Shown one piece after another: positions 11,900-58,592 of a stretch of 64,000 nt of DNA. The stretch is from Guillardia theta CCMP2712. Taxonomy: Eukaryota; Protista; Cryptophyta. The stretch spans positions 305,109 to 369,108 of the forward strand of contig NW_005434628.1 of assembly GCF_000315625.1 (NCBI RefSeq), in the 5' to 3' direction. Position numbers and translations under genes: made by a program. The stretch's first letter is position 1; each line of letters starts with the position of its first letter. Under the pieces are notes generated by a model that was given only the letters and a program-made list of their open reading frames with translations, was not told the DNA's origin and ran no database searches.

Positions 11900-12025
11900 C
11901 TCCGCCGGACACTCAGTGCCGGCACCCGGGCCGCCGGCCCGGCCGCCGGGCAGCGCCGGATCGTCAGTCAAAAGTTCAACGGTTTTCAAACTTAAAACTT
12001 TGAGAGTGAAGAAAGTTTCAAACCA
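11900..12025. promoter_or_regulatory. CGG/CCG-rich quasi-palindromic patch plus AACTT/AAGTT motifs upstream of TRPM
   Basis: gccggacactcagtgccggcacccgggccgccggcccggccgccggg followed by aaagttca..aaactt..aaagtttc. Confidence 0.4.
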
Positions 12026-23917: not shown

Positions 23918-24224
23918 GCCGCTAACGTTCTCTTTCTGCCTCTCGGTAATGGTCAGTGACCTTGTATTCACTTAAGCAAAAACCAGCACTCACCATCGTC
24001 TTTCATTTACTTTCATTTCCAAGTGCAGATGCATCTTAGTTAAAAATTCTCAACATTCTCAAAATCCTTCAATTCGGCATTGATCTCAGCTTGACATCTA
24101 TCATGTTGTCCGCACATACATCACAGTAGCAAGCCCTCCCTCAAGCCTCATGTCAGCATCGATGCATCGCAGTATTAGTTAGACAAGGAAAAAACCTACT
24201 AGGCTAGTCAAACTTATTCAAGTT

Positions 24225-24300
24225 GCCGCAGCGACCCCGAGCCGGGCCCCGGTCGTCGGCGGCCCAGGTGACCGACCGTACTCACAGAGTCATGCAGGAC
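24225..24300. promoter_or_regulatory. CGG/CCG-rich patch upstream of the TPR gene
   Basis: gccgcagcgaccccgagccgggccccggtcgtcggcggcccaggtgaccgaccgtactcacagagtca. Confidence 0.35.
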
Positions 24301-24425
24301 ATATTGCTCACGTTGCCTTCGTCATCCTGACGGTTTGAGTAAAGGGCCTGACGGTTGTTCTCACCTCTGTGACTACTGGCCTCTGATCCACAATCCATGA
24401 AGCTGCTCAGACCTCTCTGGCAGAT

Positions 24426-25159
24426 ATCCTCATGCCTGACCCATTCAGAGATGGCGTCATCGCAAACATCATCACGGTCCCGCAGATCCTCGCAGATATG
24501 TCTTGCTCAGGCTCGTAAGGTCGAGGGTGTCTACGTGGACCCGAGGCTGCGCCAGCCAGGCAACCTCGTCGTGACCGCCGCCAACCATGGCGTTACCTGG
24601 ACATGCTGGATAGCTGGATGTGCTTTGCGGACAGGACAGGCTGGCAGTACTTGCCACGGTGCTGGCGTTCGATCTGAAGCTGTACAGACACATCACCCAC
24701 GCCCATCCGAACAAGACGTCGTGCCCTGTCTTCGACAGCAAGGTGGAGCTGTCAAGACCGAGTAATTTCCAGTCTTCAGTCTTCAACATTGTATCTTGTC
24801 TGAAGATCAAGGCAGTAGCCAACCTTCTCCATCACGGGTACTCGGTGTTATTCCTCGACGTGGACGTGCGATGGAAGCAAGACATCTGGAAGATCGTCAG
24901 GTCGTCGCCGTGCGACTACACGTTTCAGATCAACCGGCATGAATACCAAGGCGTCCCCTTCACGTACAGCGGGAGCGATGAAGGGAACACGGGGGTGTAC
25001 TAAGAGAGTGACAGACGAGGCGCGGGAGGCGCTTGGTGTGCTTCTTGTGCATGCCAACTATCTGGTGGGGAAGAGGTCGAAGGTTGAGAACCTGCAGAGC
25101 GGATTGGGTACTGGGACTGTCCGCCTGCACAGAAGCAGCATGAATGACGTAGATGTTTT
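24426..25159 (+). pseudogene. Recent inverted, 5'-truncated copy of the neighbouring glycosyltransferase
   Basis: Near-identical to the reverse complement of 26068-27040, but with four frameshifting insertions (7, 2, 5, 2 bp), a ~255-bp deletion removing the DDQ motif, and no transmembrane-encoding 5' end. Confidence 0.92.
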
Positions 25160-26079
25160 TACAGCAATTCGAAACAAATTCGCATCATGTTTATGTGAGA
25201 GAGCGTTCGTTTCATTCGGTCTTCAAAATGAAGAGATGAGCGAGGGTAACTGAACTTGAAATTCACGGGTGTGATTGATTTTTCTCCGGGTTGCGATGAT
25301 TGCTTCAACTCTTTTGTTGTAGTGATTCATTCCATTGCAAGTCAGAACGCCTTTGAGGCGATGATACCTGTCAAGATTTCTGCATCGTCAGGGTCAACGA
25401 CACCGGGTAATTAGATTAGCATCAAGTTGCTCTGACTTCACCTAAGGATTGAAAAAACAAAGTTGATTAGCGATTCACTATCATCTATTGAATCGCTATG
25501 TTGATGTTTCAGGTCGTGCTAAGCTCGTTTCCTCCTCCTCCTTTCATTCTTATTTGTCGTGTTTGTGGTCATTGTCTTCACCAGCTTCTGCTCCGTCGTC
25601 TTCACAGTCATCATCACCATCATATGTCTTATTAACGTCGTTCGACGTCGTCCTCATTGTCATTTTCAGAGGTAATGCTTCAGTTCAACTTCGGTTTCAT
25701 CCCCCGCGATGTCGTAATTGTCATCATCAAGTCGTCCTGGTGTTCAACTGCCTCGGCTTCATCATGGCATTCCTGTCTGTCTCACCCAAACCTTCCTCAC
25801 TACTTCTTTGAAAACTATTTGTTTATCGATTCCATCCTCCATTTCTTCCCCCCCCGCCCTCCCCCCCCCCCACCCCACTCCGGGTTGTATCAGCCATAGT
25901 TTCTGTCTTCGTCAATCTGACTTCGCATGCCAATGGAGTTTCTCAAAATTTCGCAGGCTTCAACAACTCCCATATGAGGCAAAGCAAATCAAGCAGCTTC
26001 ATCTCTGCGTGAGATTGCAATGACCGTGTTGAAATCTCAATGTGCATACAGCACAATCAAGACCCGCAAAACATCTACG

Positions 26080-27165
26080 TCATTCATGCTGCTTCTGTGC
26101 AGGCGGACAGTCCCAGTACCCGATCCTCTGCAGGTTCTCAACCTTCGGCCTCTTCCCCACCAGATAGTTGGCATGCACAAGAAGCACACCAAGCGCCTCC
26201 CGCGCCTCGTCTGTCACTCTCAGCGCCCAGCCCGAGGCTATCTGGTAGGGGTCAAACGGGCAGAAGCTGAGCTTGTCTGCCGGCAGCTTCGTCTGCCACG
26301 CTGGATGCGCTGACGACCCGTTCACTGCCTCGTGGAAGAAAACCGCCCGCTGACTCAAGAACCGTGATCGCAGCTCGTTCCAAAACAACGTCTGATCGTC
26401 AAGCTCCAGCGGCGACAGACAAGACCCGTTGGCTACTTGCTGGAACAGGTCTCTCACCGCCCTCGTCGGCTTCGCGTAGTACACCCCCGTGTTCCCTTCA
26501 TCGCTCCCGCTGTACGTGAAGGGGACGCCTTGGTATTCATGCCGGTTGATCTGAAACGTGTAGTCGCACGGCGACGACCTGACGATCTTCCAGATGTCTT
26601 GCTTCCATCGCACGTCCACGTCGAGGAATAACACCGAGTACCCGTGATGGAGAAGGTTGGCTACTGCCTTGATCTTCAGACAAGATACAATGTTGAAGAC
26701 TGAAGACTGGAAATTACTCGGTCTTGACAGCTCCACCTTGCTGTCGAAGACAGGGCACGACGTCTTGTTCGGATGGGCGTGGGTGATGTGTCTGTACAGC
26801 TTCAGATCGAACGCCAGCACCAAGTACTGCCAGCCTGTCCTGTCCGCAAAGCACATCCAGCTATCCAGCATGTCCAGGTAACCATGGTTGGCGGCGGTCA
26901 CGACGAGGTTGCCTGGCTGGCGCAGCCTCGGGTCCACATAGACACCCTCGACCTTACGAGCCTGAGCAAGACATATCTGCGAGGATCTGCGGGACATGTT
27001 TGCGATGACGCCATCTCTGAATGGGTCAGGCATGAGGATGTCTAACCAGGAGACCTGACCGATAGAAGAAAAGATGACGGCTACAAGTTGCATCAAGATG
27101 ATGAAGGCAACGATAGCCCATCGAAGTCTCCTTGTGGAAAACCTGGCAGGACATGGTATCGACAT
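26080..27165 (-). CDS. Nucleotide-diphospho-sugar transferase (GT77-like type II membrane glycosyltransferase), intronless
   Basis: N-terminal TM helix, VVTAANHGYLDMLDSW, KIKAVANLLHHGYSVLFLDVDV (DxD), GNTGVYYAKPT, DDQTLFW, VHANYLVGKRPK. Confidence 0.9.
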   Translation of the reverse strand: MSIPCPARFSTRRLRWAIVAFIILMQLVAVIFSSIGQVSWLDILMPDPFRDGVIANMSRRSSQICLAQARKVEGVYVDPRLRQPGNLVVTAANHGYLDMLDSWMCFADRTGWQYLVLAFDLKLYRHITHAHPNKTSCPVFDSKVELSRPSNFQSSVFNIVSCLKIKAVANLLHHGYSVLFLDVDVRWKQDIWKIVRSSPCDYTFQINRHEYQGVPFTYSGSDEGNTGVYYAKPTRAVRDLFQQVANGSCLSPLELDDQTLFWNELRSRFLSQRAVFFHEAVNGSSAHPAWQTKLPADKLSFCPFDPYQIASGWALRVTDEAREALGVLLVHANYLVGKRPKVENLQRIGYWDCPPAQKQHE

Positions 27166-27815: not shown

Positions 27816-28235
27816 CCTCCCCCCTCCCGACACCAAAACCCCCACGGCTGATCCAAGCCCTCCCACGCTCCCCCCTCCCACGCTCCTCCTGCCCGCTCCT
27901 TCTTGCCTCCTGCGACTTGTCCTTCCTCCTACACCTAGCTCTTCTCTCCTCCCACCCAAGCCCCATACCTCCCTCTCGTTCTTCCCTTTCGACTCTCCGC
28001 GCCCTGCTTGGTGCACATTCGTAGCTGCTGCCCCCCCACACCCTCGGCACAGCGTCGTCGCCCCGGCCTTTGATCTTGTCGGCTCCTTGCTTGGCGCCTT
28101 GCTACCCTCATCTTCCCATCCCCTCATCCCTCTACAGCCACGACTCGTCTTTCTCCCTCCCGCCTCTTTCCGGAATCTCGTTCCCCCCAGGCAACAACCC
28201 CAAGCTACTCCCCCCGTGCTGTCGACCAAGACGCC

Positions 28236-28924
28236 ATGTGCCGCTGCCATCTCTCAGAGACTAGCCCAGAGCCCGTGCTGCCCTCCCATCCCATCAAGGG
28301 AGGGCTCACCACTCCTCACTGGCATCAGTGCATGGAGCTCAGAAACAAGAGTCGCTACTTCGGCCCCGTCCGCAGGACCCCCTCGAGTTGCCGGTATCAC
28401 GCCTGCAAGCGGGGCAAGGCGGTACACACGCGGCGACAGCAAGATGATACCAGCGGCCCAGACAGCCGTCGCTCCCCCGCGCAAGTCCAGGACACCGATG
28501 CGCTCCAGGACCTCTCCACCGAAGACGAGAGACTGGACCATGACAGCCCTCTGACGTTCTTCTACATGGAGGGAGACGAGGCGTTCTCGGACAGGCTGGA
28601 GGCGCCGTACTCGCTGGACCTGATCAAGGTAAGCGGCGCGTAGGAGGGCGTGCGAGCGAGGAGGCTGACGGCAGGGCTTGCACAGGACCTTGACAATGAG
28701 CACGCGCTCGACCGTTCCAAGTCGTTGGACTCGCCACTGTACCCGTTGTACTGGGTGGAAGCGGGGCTAGAGAGGCTGGCGAGGATCGAGAAGGAGTCAG
28801 CAGGGATGCAGAGCGAGGTCAGAATCATGCGTGGAGGGGGGAGAGGGGTGGCTGACGGGTTGTTTGTGTGCAGGAGATAGAGAAGGGCTGGGACGAGTGG
28901 ATTGAAGCTCTGAATATGGAGTAG
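28236..28924 (+). CDS. Orphan ~191-aa protein, copy A (3 exons)
   Basis: Exons 28236-28628, 28686-28817, 28874-28924 joined in frame by 57- and 56-nt GT-AG introns; ends EIEKGWDEWIEALNME*. Confidence 0.7.
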
Positions 28925-29785
28925 TGGATACATAACTTGTTATTTGTATCTCGAATATCTGGTCTCTGTTTGTAAATACACTTTTGAATAAGACATTCGC
29001 TGTACCACTTGGAAAGCTTTTTTTGTTTGAAAGCTTTTTCTACATTTTCCTTTCAATGTTGCGCCTTGAAAATAAAATGCGATTATCAGACCATTCGCTC
29101 GTTGTTCAAGCGTATTAACTTCATTTTAGCATGTTGGGTACAAGACTTGTGTACTGCCCATCCTCATTGTAGGCTCTTGCTGAACAGGAACACAATGTAT
29201 CAGGAATGGTGCACAAAGCAAATGTGAATTCAATGATGAAAGATATAGAAGACTCATCTTACTGGATCCACCATCACACCATTCTTTCGGCATCTGCCGC
29301 ATTCTTCCCTGGCGCTGCCATCTTTGATGCGCCTGGGAGCATCAAGTGCTGACATTCGTGTGGTGCAAACCGAAATTCAACTAATATAGTTTTAACATCA
29401 GCAATTCCGTACTGGATACTGTATGTAAGTAAATATTTAAAACGTCTTTGTATGATGTAACGTGTGATCCTGATCACAACGAAACATGAGCGGCCTTGAC
29501 TCTTGGTGGCGACCGTCTTGCACAATACTGAGGGCTTCACGAGCTCTCATAGCGAGTCCAGGATTTCTCTCTAACAGACAGGTTAAAGCCGCCAGATGAA
29601 TGATAGACCAACTTGGCGACTCTTCACAGGATGAACGATCAGATTCTTTCAGCTGAGCACTAATCAACAAGACCCATTCAATGAAGAAGAAGAAATGAAG
29701 AAGCATTGATGAGTCGTATTATTTACATAACACCAGAGGGCGTTTGAACTGAAAGTCTAACAAAGATCCAAGATAAACGCTTTGC

Positions 29786-30474
29786 CTACTCCACATTCAG
29801 AGCTTCAATCCACTCGTCCCAGCCCTTCTCTATCTCCTGCACACAAACAACCCGTCAGCCACCCCTCTCCCCCCTCCACGCATGATTCTGACCTCGCTCT
29901 GCATCCCTGCTGACTCCTTCTCGATCCTCGCCAGCCTCTCTAGCCCCGCTTCCACCCAGTACAACGGGTACAGTGGCGAGTCCAACGACTTGGAACGGTC
30001 GAGCGCGTGCTCATTGTCAAGGTCCTGTGCAAGCCCTGCCGTCAGCCTCCTCGCTCGCACGCCCTCCTACGCGCCGCTTACCTTGATCAGGTCCAGCGAG
30101 TACGGCGCCTCCAGCCTGTCCGAGAACGCCTCGTCTCCCTCCATGTAGAAGAACGTCAGAGGGCTGTCATGGTCCAGTCTCTCGTCTTCGGTGGAGAGGT
30201 CCTGGAGCGCATCGGTGTCCTGGACTTGCGCGGGGGAGCGACGGCTGTCTGGGCCGCTGGTATCATCTTGCTGTCGCCGCGTGTGTACCGCCTTGCCCCG
30301 CTTGCAGGCATGATACCGGCAACTCGAGGGGGTCCTGCGGACGGGGCCGAAGTAGCGACTCTTGTTTCTGAGCTCCATGCACTGATGCCAGTGAGGAGTG
30401 GTGAGCCCTCCCTTGATGGGATGGGAGGGCAGCACGGGCTCTGGGCTAGTCTCTGAGAGATGGCAGCGGCACAT
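29786..30474 (-). CDS. Orphan ~191-aa protein, copy B (3 exons)
   Basis: Mirror image of copy A with intact splice sites; one synonymous change and one M>V change seen. Confidence 0.7.
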
Positions 30475-31654
30475 GGCGTCTTGGTCGACAGCACGGGGGG
30501 AGTAGCTTGGGGTTGTTGCCTGGGGGGAACGAGATTCCGGAAAGAGGCGGGAGGGAGAAAGACGAGTCGTGGCTGTAGAGGGATGAGGGGATGGGAAGAT
30601 GAGGGTAGCAAGGCACCAAGCAAGGAGCCGATAAGATCAAAGGCCGGGGCGACGACGCTGTGCCGAGGGTGTGGGGGGGCAGCAGCTACGAATGTGCACC
30701 AAGAAGGGCGCGGAGAGTCGAAAGGGAAGAACGAGAGGGTGGTATGGGGCTTGGGTGGGAAGAGAGAAGAGCTATGTGTAGGAGGAAGGACAAGTCGCAG
30801 GAGGCAAGAAGGAGCGGGCAGGAGGAGCGTGGGAGGGGGGAGCGTGGGAGGGCTTGGATCAGCCGTGGGGGTTTTGGTGTCGGGAGGGGGAAAGGGAAGG
30901 GAGGGGTTATTCTTGTGGTAGGGGTAGGTACCATAATTGGGTTCCATGTGTACAGAGTTTGCTTTGTTGTCCAGGGGGTACTTTCACAGGGTGGTTTGCA
31001 ATATTAAGGTAGGTAGGGGTCCTGTCCTAATCACCTGGACGCAGTAGCGAGAGGCATGGAAGGGTGGAGATGATCTTTGGACCTAGCACTTGGGGTGGGT
31101 ACCACCTTGCTATGCAGTTTTTCTATTTTCTGGGTGGGTGATTTGGGGTGAAAAGAGGGTAGGGTATGCTCTGCATCGTTTTGGTAAGCTTGTCATAAGG
31201 GGGAGGGGGTAGGCATAATGTGGGTAGGGGTACATGGTGGCCAGGGGGTCGTAAAGGCTGGCAGGAGACGAAAGAAGCTTTTTTCGGAAATCTGATTCCA
31301 CCCCTTCTTTTATCATCCATAGGAGGGGTGTCTGAATACCAAGAAGTGCCTCAGAAATGGGTAGACTGATCTCTAATATCTCAGCTATGACTTCTGTGCT
31401 GTCTTCTATTCAACTCTGAGGCAGCTTTCCAAAGGTTGTTCTGAGGCGATGTTGGTGGGGTGGAGATCAACATGCTCTTGTAAAATCCGACGGCTATCAT
31501 CTGTTCTCCGATGCCGCGCGGATTAGCAGGATCATGAAAGATAACTCATGCAACATAACAGACATGTTCAAAGTACATGAGATCTGCCCTTGCTAGACAA
31601 AGCTTACATAATGTATAAACCATGCACATTTCCAATATCATTTGTTCGCAGAGT

Positions 31655-51900: not shown

Positions 51901-52110
51901 GCGTCGGGGATCGGCGCTGGCACGCACAACTCCCAGAGGATCTTTGAGCCTTCCTGCATCTCTCCAAGGCATATTCGAGCGGCATGTACATCTCGCATCA
52001 CCTTGTGTTTGTCTATCGCATCATCAGCTCGTCACTTGTTGTCATCATTGCGATCCTGCTTGCTTGCTCTTCTCCTCCTTCCATCTGCCCTCGTCCTCCC
52101 CCGACGCCAT
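39933..52110 (-). CDS. Giant leucine-rich-repeat protein (>3,000 aa) made of tandem capped LRR cassettes
   Basis: The 2474-aa ORF 43083-50507 is continuous LxxLxLxxNxLxxLPxxI repeats punctuated by NPLxSPPxE(I/V)xxxGxxxIxxYL caps; flanking exons (51009-51830, 50750-50935, 39933-43060) encode the same repeats. Terminal exons approximate. Confidence 0.9.
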
Positions 52111-52144
52111 GTTGGAGCTACTCGCTCAGTTGATTGCTTGGTGC

Positions 52145-52635
52145 TCCCGGGTCTAGGCCCCGGCCGGCCTGCCGGGTTCGACTCACTGTCAGTCCGTCCC
52201 GGCCCGGCCCGGCGGCCGCGCGGACCGTACCGTCGGACTCCCGGCGGCACTGAGTGACAGTGACCGTGGAGTCGGCCCGGTGACTGCCGTATGGTACTAC
52301 ACCGCCGTGCACCGGCCCGGTCCGACCACAACCACGGTTGAATAACTTTGAGTAATCTTTTTCTTAGTAGAGCCGCTTTTTCTTACCCGGGCCGGTTTAC
52401 TCAGTTGAGTAAACTTTTCGGCCCCCGTGAAGTTAAAGCTTTTTCTTAGTTGAACTTTGCCAAATTGAGTAAACTTTTTCTTAGATTAGGTAGTACTGTA
52501 GACTCGAGAGAGAGAGAGAGTCCGGTCAACTTTCAACTGTAAGTTCGATACCGGGCCGCCGTTCCGAGTTCCGGGTTGACTAGAATGATGTCTTTCATTT
52601 TTTACCTTCGGTTGACAAGAATGATGTCTTTTTTT
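52145..52635. promoter_or_regulatory. Divergent intergenic region: CGG/CCG patch, repeated TTGAGTAA/CTTTTTCTTA motifs, short duplication
   Basis: CGG-rich 52148-52340; ttgagtaa x3 and tttttctta x4 in 52345-52490; ggttgac(t/a)agaatgatgtcttt twice (~52574 and ~52610). Confidence 0.5.
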
Positions 52636-55609: not shown

Positions 55610-57981
55610 ATGCGCTCAGGACAGGCTGGAATGCTCTTCCGGACTTTTGTCATGTCTGCGGCATCATGCGACAGATCTGCGAACCTGGTGGTGGTAGGAG
55701 GAGGCATCTCAGGTAGACTGAAGGGAGGACGGGAGATGCAGTTGCCTTGCCTAAGAACGATGGCAGGACTATCAGCAGCGGTCAAGCTGCATCAGCACGG
55801 GTTCAAAGTGAAGGTGCTGGAGGCGTCCGAGAAAGTTGGGGGGAGGATGAGAAGCCTGTACGGTCCTGCTGGGGTTGTCGAGATAGGAGCGCAGTGGATG
55901 CATGGGACTGTCGGGAACCCTGTGTATGACCTGGCAAAGAAGGAAGGGCTTATGGAGGAGGAGGAGAAATATATGAGAATGCAGGACGAGACCTTCGGTC
56001 GCATGTGCTTCGTCAAGGAAGGAGGGGAGGAGGTGGATGAACAAGTGCTGGAGGACGTCGTGTCAGCGTACGACGACTTGCTGGAAGAGTTGGAGCAGGG
56101 CATGGCAGCGCCGGCAGGCTCAGCTGAAGATTACATCCGGTATGCGAGCAGCGTGAAGGATGCTGCTGCTGACTTGCTGTCCTTGTGCTGTAAGGCGAAG
56201 GCTGGGAGAAGAAGGGGCTCTAAACAAGCATGCGGGGTTGGAAGACGACGTGGAGAGGGTCTTGGAATGGAAGAGCCGCATGTTTGTGTTGTGCTCTCCG
56301 CTCTGACAGTGAAGTGAAGGAGTGCAAACAGGCAAGGGAACATCGATGGCTCTCACCCTTCCACCGTGTCCACTTCACACTTCATCAACTTCAAGGAGCT
56401 TGAGGGTGCGTACGGTCAACAGTAATTCCCTCCACTAGTGGGTCTCACGCCAGTGAGCAGGAGAACGAATCCTTCCTGTGCCCTGCGGATACTCAAAGAT
56501 CGTACAATCCCTCGCGAATCTTCTTCCTGCAGATGCTGTCGTCACCTCTGCTAGAGTCTCGAGCATCTCAACTCTTGTTGACCAAGAGGTTGGCAGTGCT
56601 GTCCCCTTCCTTGCTTGACCTGTGAGCCCTTGGTGTAGGATGAAGAGAGGATCAAACTTGTGTGTAGCAATGGACAAGAATACTTTGCAGATGATGTTAT
56701 TGTTGCCACGTCCCTTGGTGTTCTAAAACACTCAGGTCTCCTTCTGCCAACTTCTTCCTCCTACTTCTTCCCTCCCGCTTTCCCCCTCCTCCCTCCTCCC
56801 TCCTCCCTCCTGGCTGTCGGTTGCTTACACTTCATCTGTTCAGATATCCAGTTCGATCCGGAGCTGCCGCAGTGGAAGCGAGAGGCGATCAGCAGGATGG
56901 GGATGGGTGTGGTGAGTGCGAGGCAGCTGTAAAAGTCGCGCCTGATCTCCTCCCAGGTCGAGAAGGTTTTCTTCGAATTCACTGAGGAGTGAGTCGGGTT
57001 GTTGGCGAGCAAGACGAGCTTCTGACCTTGAGTTTGCTCATGAACTCTCAGCGACATGGAGACTATGGAGGTGAACTTCAGCACCTCCCCCCGTCTCTCC
57101 TCATCCTCTTCCCAGGAGAAGGGATTCTGCTTCCGAAGCATGTGAACCCTGCTTCTGAGACCTCCTCCGGACTGTGGCCTGACCCTCAAACTTGCCACAG
57201 CCTTCCAAGGCAACAGGATGAACAGAGTCTAAGCTTTCTTTGCCGAGCCACAGGCATGTACAGAGTCCCGATGTCAAGGTAATTTCTCCCCTCCCCTCCC
57301 ACCCTCCTCCCAAGTGCATGACGCAAGTGGCAGGTACGTTTGCATGTGGCTGACTGGAGCGGATGTCTCGGAAAAGCTCAGCAAGACGTCGGATGAAGAG
57401 CTCATCTCACAATTTGTATGCAGACTTTCATGCACGCCTTCCTTCCTCACTCCCCCCAATCAACCGCTCTCCTCCATTCCTGACTCCCTTCCCAGTCCAC
57501 AGTGACCGATCCTCCCCTGCGCCTGTTTCTCCTATGGGCTACTTCCTCTTATTCCTCTCCTCTCAGTCTCCTTCAATCTCTCCTCCTCCTTTCTTGAACT
57601 GCATCGTCATCAGGTACAGCTCGTCAGGGCTTTCGCGCGCCCCACGGACCAGCCTCACATCCCCAGCCCATTCAACGTGGTCAGGTCGAGCTGGGGAAGT
57701 GACCCTCACTTCAGGAAGGCTCCAGCTGGGGAGATTCGAGCTGACTTGTCGTGAGCAGGGGGTCCTACTCCTTCCTCTCGACCTCGTCAACACAGGAGGA
57801 TATCCGTGCGCTGGGAGAGCCTGTTGTTGTCGGCAGCCAACAGAAGGCTTGCCATATCTGCTTCGCGGGGGAGGCGACCCACGAGAACTTCTATGGGACC
57901 GTCCATGGCGCCTACCTGGCCGGGGAAAGAGAAGCTCGGAGGATGATTCGTCTCCGATCAGCGCAGCCCATCGGCGACTGA
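55610..57981 (+). CDS. Flavin-containing amine oxidase (polyamine/spermine oxidase-like), multi-exon
   Basis: VVVGGGIS-GLSAA, VLEASEKVGGR, EIGAQWMHGTVGNPVYDLA, ADDVIVATSLGVLK, FDPELPQWKREAISRMGMG-VVEKVF, GSYS, FAGEATHENFYGTVHGAYLAGEREA. Confidence 0.92.
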
Positions 57982-58039
57982 GAAGCCGTTTGTGGACCAC
58001 CCGCCGCATTCGTCCGAGTCGTAATCAACGTACGGAGGC

Positions 58040-58400
58040 TTCGATCATCGGATTCCGTCGGAGCTGAGCGCGACGGTGACCGGCCGATCCAATAGCCTCC
58101 GAGGCTCCGACGTGCACCCAGTGACACTCAGTCACGGCCCGGCCGGGCGGCGACTCCCGCGGGCCTGGCATGATCCCGGCGACGGCGGATCGGACGCGTC
58201 ATGGCATGATCCGTACGGTGGACTCGGACGGCACCGTGTACCGATACTTCCGATCGATCCGTTCCGAACTTGAAGTTTCTGAGGCTACTGAGCGGCCTAC
58301 GGTACGGTAGCGGCCCGGCCCGCCGGCCGGCCCCGCGGCGCGGCGCCGGGGCGCGATCCGATCGGATCGGACCCCGAGCCGGCCCGGCACTGGCAATGAT
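58040..58400. other. Largest CGG/CCG-rich quasi-palindromic patch
   Basis: cagtcacggcccggccggg..ccgtacgg..tacggtacggtagcggcccggcccgccggccggccccgcggcgcggcgccgggg..gatccgatcggatcgg. Confidence 0.6.
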
Positions 58401-58592
58401 TGATTAGTCAACTTAATGATTCGCGGGCTTGCCTCGTCTTGGTAGCTGGAGAGGCAAACATTGACTTTTACGTGACAGTTGCACCCACAGAGTTGACGGG
58501 CCGGCAAGGCATCAGCCAGCCCAACATAATATGAATATCTTGAATAAATTTGAAATATGCATGAAACATTTCATGTAGCTGAATCTCTCATT

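Follow-up and report, generated by a model that had tools for sequence, protein, structure and literature searches.

The window that we analysed is a stretch of 64,000 nucleotides from scaffold JH993010.1 of assembly GCA_000315625.1, which represents the cryptophyte Guillardia theta CCMP2712 (PMC8379373). At the locus described here, an intact gene (B) lies next to a damaged, inverted copy of part of it (A):

24421..25159, forward strand: copy A, pseudogene; inverted duplicate of gene B, truncated and with frameshifts
25160..26067, no strand: A/B spacer, 908 nt of unique sequence between both arms, with a poly-C run at about 25850-25881
26080..27165, reverse strand: gene B, intact and intronless, 361 aa, a nucleotide-diphospho-sugar transferase (PF03407)

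Gene B is a single open 361-aa frame with a clear match to PF03407. In a gapped alignment, copy A (24421-25159) pairs with the reverse complement of B 27044-26068, and the two form a tail-to-tail, inverted, partial duplicate. No homology was found past the edges of the A/B arms, no repeated element at the A/B locus, and no paralogues of gene B. A search of JGI metagenomes for close relatives with which the events could be ordered returned only homologues of 26-32% identity. A paralogue search with the LRR giant gene gave metagenomic matches and no usable other G. theta loci, and the window holds no duplicates that would enlarge the sample beyond A/B and a neighbouring inverted repeat. In the public annotation, the pseudogene (24421-25003; L001 12163-12734) is modelled as a 137-aa PF03407 gene. 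An annotated 158-nt "intron" in this model skips the frameshifting insertions, so that the public gene set turns a pseudogene into a gene by means of an intron invented over frameshifts.

An origin of A through RNA was considered and rejected. Against a processed pseudogene, the parent B is itself intronless, and A ends 12 nt past the stop codon; a transcript-like contig extends at least 190 nt beyond the end of the copy, and there is no run of A residues at 25160. RNA editing, or retrocopying of an edited mRNA, was likewise rejected: the end of A does not coincide with a poly(A) site, and the B-form contig from run X1 is collinear with the genome and enters the 3' flank of B. Nothing therefore indicates RNA editing, and A did not arise by retrocopying. 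In the spacer, an X1 (RNA-like) contig covers 25148-25853, with a depth about 40% that of the B transcript and nothing upstream of A; a transcript of B may read far into the spacer. At the poly-C-rich run (25850-25881) contig depth is about 1000 times that of the neighbouring sequence. This run is of low complexity and shared genome-wide, and all contigs break there.

Insertions and deletion in copy A

The larger differences of A from B are the following:

24470..24476, forward strand: insertion 1, +7 (CATCACG), unique placement, at the site between CAT and GTC; A form in DNA contigs of runs X2 and X5
24591..24592, forward strand: insertion 2, CG (or GC at 24590-91), between ATGG and TT; A form in X2 and X5
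24654..24658, forward strand: insertion 3, CCACG (or GCCAC; range 24653-58), inside GG; A form in X5, whereas the X2 contig breaks here
25002..25004, forward strand: deletion junction, where 254/255 nt of B 26223-26476 are gone; junction contigs in X2 and X5
25100..25101, forward strand: insertion 4, CG (or GC; range 25099-101), inside GG; B form in X2, X5 and X1 contigs

The gapped alignment thus shows four pure insertions, one 254/255-nt deletion and 3-6 substitutions; at each of the four insertion sites the flanking bases are all retained. The substitutions lie at 24534, 25077 and 25105; two more are found at the left edge (24421 and 24425), and one base at the deletion junction (25003) is ambiguous. 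The initial annotation had listed four insertions and three substitutions, and our alignment reproduces both its coordinates and its counts; the deletion had gone unmentioned. About five indels against 3-6 substitutions amount to a ratio of about 1:1, far above the usual one.

Gene B is collinear and gap-free at all four insertion sites with its orthologue from the cryptophyte Proteomonas, to which it is 47% identical, and the 255-nt segment deleted in A is conserved between B and this orthologue. It follows that B keeps the ancestral state and that the insertions and the deletion arose in A. We also considered whether the 255-nt segment is an intron and rejected this, as it is in-frame, conserved coding sequence.

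The proposal that the insertions be checked in reads gave a divided answer: insertions 1-3 occur in contigs of independent DNA runs, but insertion 4 occurs in none. Contigs match the A form exactly over 24426-24653 in X2 and over 24426-25002 in X5, DNA runs that stem from two separate studies, and the A-specific deletion junction (24973-25033) was found in both. An assembly or sequencing artefact would be absent from independent reads, but these contigs do contain insertions 1-3 as well as the deletion junction. Insertion 4 and the neighbouring substitutions at 25077 and 25105 appear in no run, and contigs that lead into the unique flank or spacer of A carry the B form in this region. The B form there may result from bubble-popping by the contig builder; because contigs collapse near-identical paralogous paths, insertion 4 is neither confirmed nor refuted. 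Raw RNA reads from a 2026 run (X23) give zero coverage of A and of the stretches shared by A and B. Outside the pair, at 24057-24059, contigs of two DNA runs read GA in place of the C of the reference; the cause is a minor error of assembly or else a variant within single-copy sequence.

A shared pattern in the inserted bases

Small insertions normally resemble slippage or random filler. The insertions in A follow a rule: each consists of a C, the reverse complement of the end of the left flank, the reverse complement of the start of the right flank, and a G. All four have a placement that begins with C and ends with G. Insertion 1 is parsed as C, AT (the reverse complement of the left flank AT), an unexplained C, AC (the reverse complement of the right flank GT) and G; alternatively, it may be parsed as a duplication of CAT followed by C, AC and G. 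Insertion 3 reads as C, CAC (the mirror of GTG in the right flank) and G, and insertions 2 and 4 consist of the caps alone, CG. The caps and flank mirrors account for 15 of the 16 inserted bases. The initial annotation had characterized the insertions as ending in CG; they are indeed patterned, but the true common feature is that they start with C and end with G, with flank mirrors in between. Its observation that the inserted bases are in part reverse-complement copies of adjacent bases around a single C or G stands, and the fit is better than chance in simulation.

For this simulation, insertions of the same lengths were placed at random sites of B with the same placement freedom. The joint probability of an equally good fit is about 2.6e-7 for random letters of local base composition, about 6.5e-6 for filler letters of 80% GC, and about 8.6e-6 if the insertions are tandem duplications. 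Since these same data shaped the two-ended version of the rule, a penalty on the simulated values is due; after a penalty for the post hoc choice of the cap pair and of the two-ended form, P remains below about 1e-4 for this sample of four events. A fit by chance is unlikely even with a hundred-fold penalty. We also looked for a template of insertion 1 in trans: the sole match (CATCACGG at 24828) is within chance by our own count (about 0.1), and this source was rejected.

One explanation of these changes is ordinary pseudogene decay combined with chance or assembly noise, in which case the indels are unrelated and the pattern was read into them afterwards. The small sample, the discrepancy between reference and reads at 24058, and the lack of read support for insertion 4 all point this way. 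However, three of the insertions are present in independent runs, the simulated P does not exceed about 1e-5 in any of the three null models, indels and substitutions are about equally frequent, and GC-rich islands elsewhere in the window bear the same formal signature. We consider this explanation improbable.

Our search of the literature on Guillardia insertions, palindromes and end joining gave nothing specific, and no published account of the C…G rule was found. The C…G pattern points to a scar of DNA-break repair that is unusual and apparently undescribed.

Origin of the insertions

We lean towards the view that double-strand breaks in A, rejoined with every base kept, left the four insertions as scars. 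Each broken end would gain one extra C at its 3' end; for the right end, this C is a G when read on the top strand. At times the end would also acquire 2-3 nt that repeat its last bases in reverse complement, the product expected when a hairpin-capped end is opened or when an end is extended by folding back on itself ("snap-back"). The joining of two such ends would yield C-(left-flank mirror)-(right-flank mirror)-G, or simply CG where the mirrors are missing. The CG insertions could arise from a break with a 2-nt 5' overhang and fill-in of C opposite a blocked terminal nucleotide, or from the addition of a single untemplated C to each end of a blunt break. Copy A would have been broken and rejoined repeatedly, with the events concentrated locally. 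Only A shows the insertions, since selection removes frameshifts from B.

Template-independent or lesion-directed addition of dC is a property of the deoxycytidyl transferase Rev1, of N-addition by TdT and PolX enzymes, and of the 3' C tailing of reverse transcriptases. Judged by analogy, an activity of this kind could be the candidate source of the constant C; to our knowledge, none of these is known to leave a scar of one C per end at chromosomal joints. Several observations count against break scars. There are only four events, one of them seen in no run, and the two-ended rule was shaped on them. The deletion junction has a single filler or changed base, an A, and no C/G cap. In addition, three of the four insertion sites lie within GG on the sense strand, for which the addition of C caps gives no explanation.

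The initial annotation had proposed a sequence-biased insertion process that works either through repeated transposon excision or through fold-back repair. End processing of the fold-back or hairpin type fits our results, but repeated excision is unlikely, as insertion 1 fits no target-site duplication. V(D)J coding joints and the donor sites of hAT, Transib and MULE elements have 0-3-nt reverse-complement insertions and are joined without homology (in part after PMC5499845). The insertions in A resemble such hairpin-opening, or P-nucleotide, joints in that they contain short reverse-complement copies of the bases beside the break: AT and AC in insertion 1 and CAC in insertion 3 are reverse complements of the flank. 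However, classical P nucleotides form even palindromes that abut the flank, whereas in A the flank is always separated from its mirror by one added C or G.

The hAT, Transib and MULE elements form hairpins on the flanking DNA (PMC5499845), and one could assume that a hAT-like element with a 2-bp GG target duplication repeatedly inserted into and excised from A. Insertions 2, 3 and 4 lie at GG, and by our own derivation they match exactly what a hairpin with a 1-nt offset would leave, namely a terminal base kept or complemented plus palindromic nucleotides. Insertion 1, however, at the site between CAT and GTC, is compatible with no target duplication of 2, 3, 7 or 8 bp, none of the known superfamilies accounts for net gains of 2, 2, 5 and 7 nt, and three or four visits to 640 bp would be needed, which is implausible. 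We know of no superfamily that pairs a 2-bp GG duplication with flank hairpins. A hAT-like footprint has two copies of a target duplication of fixed length, with changes at their inner ends only, and this arrangement is not seen in A; unlike excision footprints, the insertions have neither a target-site duplication nor an element. The 1-nt offset of hAT gives an odd palindrome centred on the complement of the flank base, whereas the centre here is a constant C. We found no transposase-like ORF among the 10 that were scanned against Pfam out of the 18 window ORFs of at least 230 aa. Transposon footprints are a very improbable source of these insertions.

Returning to break scars with fold-back copying, synthesis-dependent microhomology-mediated end joining (SD-MMEJ) with snap-back usually leaves deletions and microhomology, and it copies beyond a loop of several bases, sometimes after untemplated addition. 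Unlike Pol theta or SD-MMEJ products, the A sites lose no base, a single constant C takes the place of the "loop", and there is a cap at either end; the combination of a deletion, microhomology and an insertion templated nearby, which marks Pol theta end joining, is absent at the four sites. In published accounts, the insertions of Pol theta and SD-MMEJ snap-back repair are templated in cis from the broken end (PMC2943611, PMC4912351, PMC5728401). Template switching at quasi-palindromes is similar as well, in that short inverted repeats are made or lengthened by complex mutation. It perfects an existing imperfect palindrome, however, and no such palindrome was improved at the A sites. Moreover, quasi-palindrome or hairpin-extension mutations occur at a very low rate in yeast mutation accumulation (PMC13493898), where they are orders of magnitude rarer than substitutions.

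The A locus thus differs from these known end-joining and fold-back signatures, to which it adds a constant single C/G pivot, zero loss of flank, no prior palindrome and no target duplication. If these insertions are break scars, then their rule-bound form (C, flank mirrors, G) would allow one specific end-processing pathway to be recognized by its mark, in a lineage of eukaryotes that has received little study.

Palindromes and a neighbouring inverted repeat

The following features of the window were compared with the A locus:

24215..24290, no strand: small patch rich in GC, some 130 nt upstream of A; odd palindromes centred on C/G, such as ccgggCcccgg
27820..30890, no strand: control inverted repeat, arms 27820-28924 and 29786-30890, 1105 nt each, 8 substitutions, 0 indels
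52101..52400, no strand: CpG-dense island, enriched in C/G-centred odd palindromes
57901..58500, no strand: CpG-dense island, enriched in C/G-centred odd palindromes

The control inverted repeat is the only other young duplicate in the window. It adjoins A/B and is likewise arranged tail-to-tail, with a spacer of 861 nt versus 908 nt for A/B; no sequence is common to the two neighbouring spacers. We rejected the possibility that it is a multi-copy element, as no contig other than this one has a record of its 85-aa gene product. The absence of indels from this repeat counts against break scars and implies that the insertion process is not uniform. However, six of the eight differences between its arms lie within 160 nt, and this clustering suggests that patchy gene conversion may homogenize the repeat.

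An alternative explanation is that all four insertions arose together with the 255-nt deletion and the ragged left edge in a single event, when the inverted copy was formed by repair synthesis of low processivity that switched templates (fold-back or MMBIR-type) and added a few bases between each dissociation and resumption. Both this timing and this cause seem unlikely to us. It would fit such an event that the changes are confined to the new arm, that the insertions are pure with all template bases retained, that the same copy has a large internal skip with a 1-nt filler, and that indels are absent from the neighbouring inverted repeat, which is of similar age. However, synthesis in one direction predicts a one-sided signature, whereas here both flanks are mirrored and both ends capped, and the same grammar occurs in single-copy islands that are no duplications. 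The confinement to the new arm is also less telling than it appears: B is under selection, and the changes could not appear there anyway. We therefore infer serial breakage and rejoining rather than a single origin.

The two islands, delimited by CpG density only, are both enriched in C/G-centred odd palindromes (2.2-4.6x, z 4-5.5). Even palindromes are not enriched in them, and A/T-centred ones not clearly so. Odd palindromes centred on C/G that have A or T in their arms number 27 where 10 are expected; since the enrichment persists when only such arms are counted, a (CCGGC)n microsatellite is not the explanation. Parts of islands at 11926-11952, 52200-52225 and 58310-58345 are nearly 5-nt periodic (CGGCC)n. 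This repeat is self-reverse-complementary about a single C, and microsatellite-like growth and fold-back insertion are therefore hard to separate in these parts.

The process that we suggest for A would be concentrated in GC-rich intergenic islands of Guillardia theta, and A lies 130 nt from such a patch. It is conceivable, although we hold this only tentatively, that frequent, locally targeted breaking and rejoining with a fixed chemistry (one C per end, often with a hairpin-like copy) writes sequence into neutral DNA and by repetition builds GC-rich, CpG-dense islands of "palindrome words" upstream of genes. If so, these islands would be a product or by-product of repair scars and not of selection on motifs, and the same events would provide a mutational route to de novo promoter-like GC islands and CpGs beside genes, as well as a source of frameshifts that quickly kills duplicates.

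The initial annotation had the insertion process acting on unconstrained DNA in general. This is not borne out in the window: the control repeat has no indels, and in the 43 kb without CpG-dense stretches the excess of odd palindromes (1.07-1.12x) is not significant. The signature thus looks local to the islands and their neighbourhood, and not uniform, as bulk DNA outside the CpG-dense islands has no significant excess of C/G-centred palindromes. This lack of excess also speaks against break scars, as does the test of the predicted order (a C-centred palindrome followed by G), which is not significant window-wide. Over the whole window, C/G-centred odd palindromes are modestly enriched over Markov models (1.17-1.45x). 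Their share among the centres increases from 0.52 for arms of 1-2 nt to 0.61 for arms of 5 nt and 0.80 for arms of 6-7 nt (odds ratio 1.2-1.9, p about 0.01-0.03).
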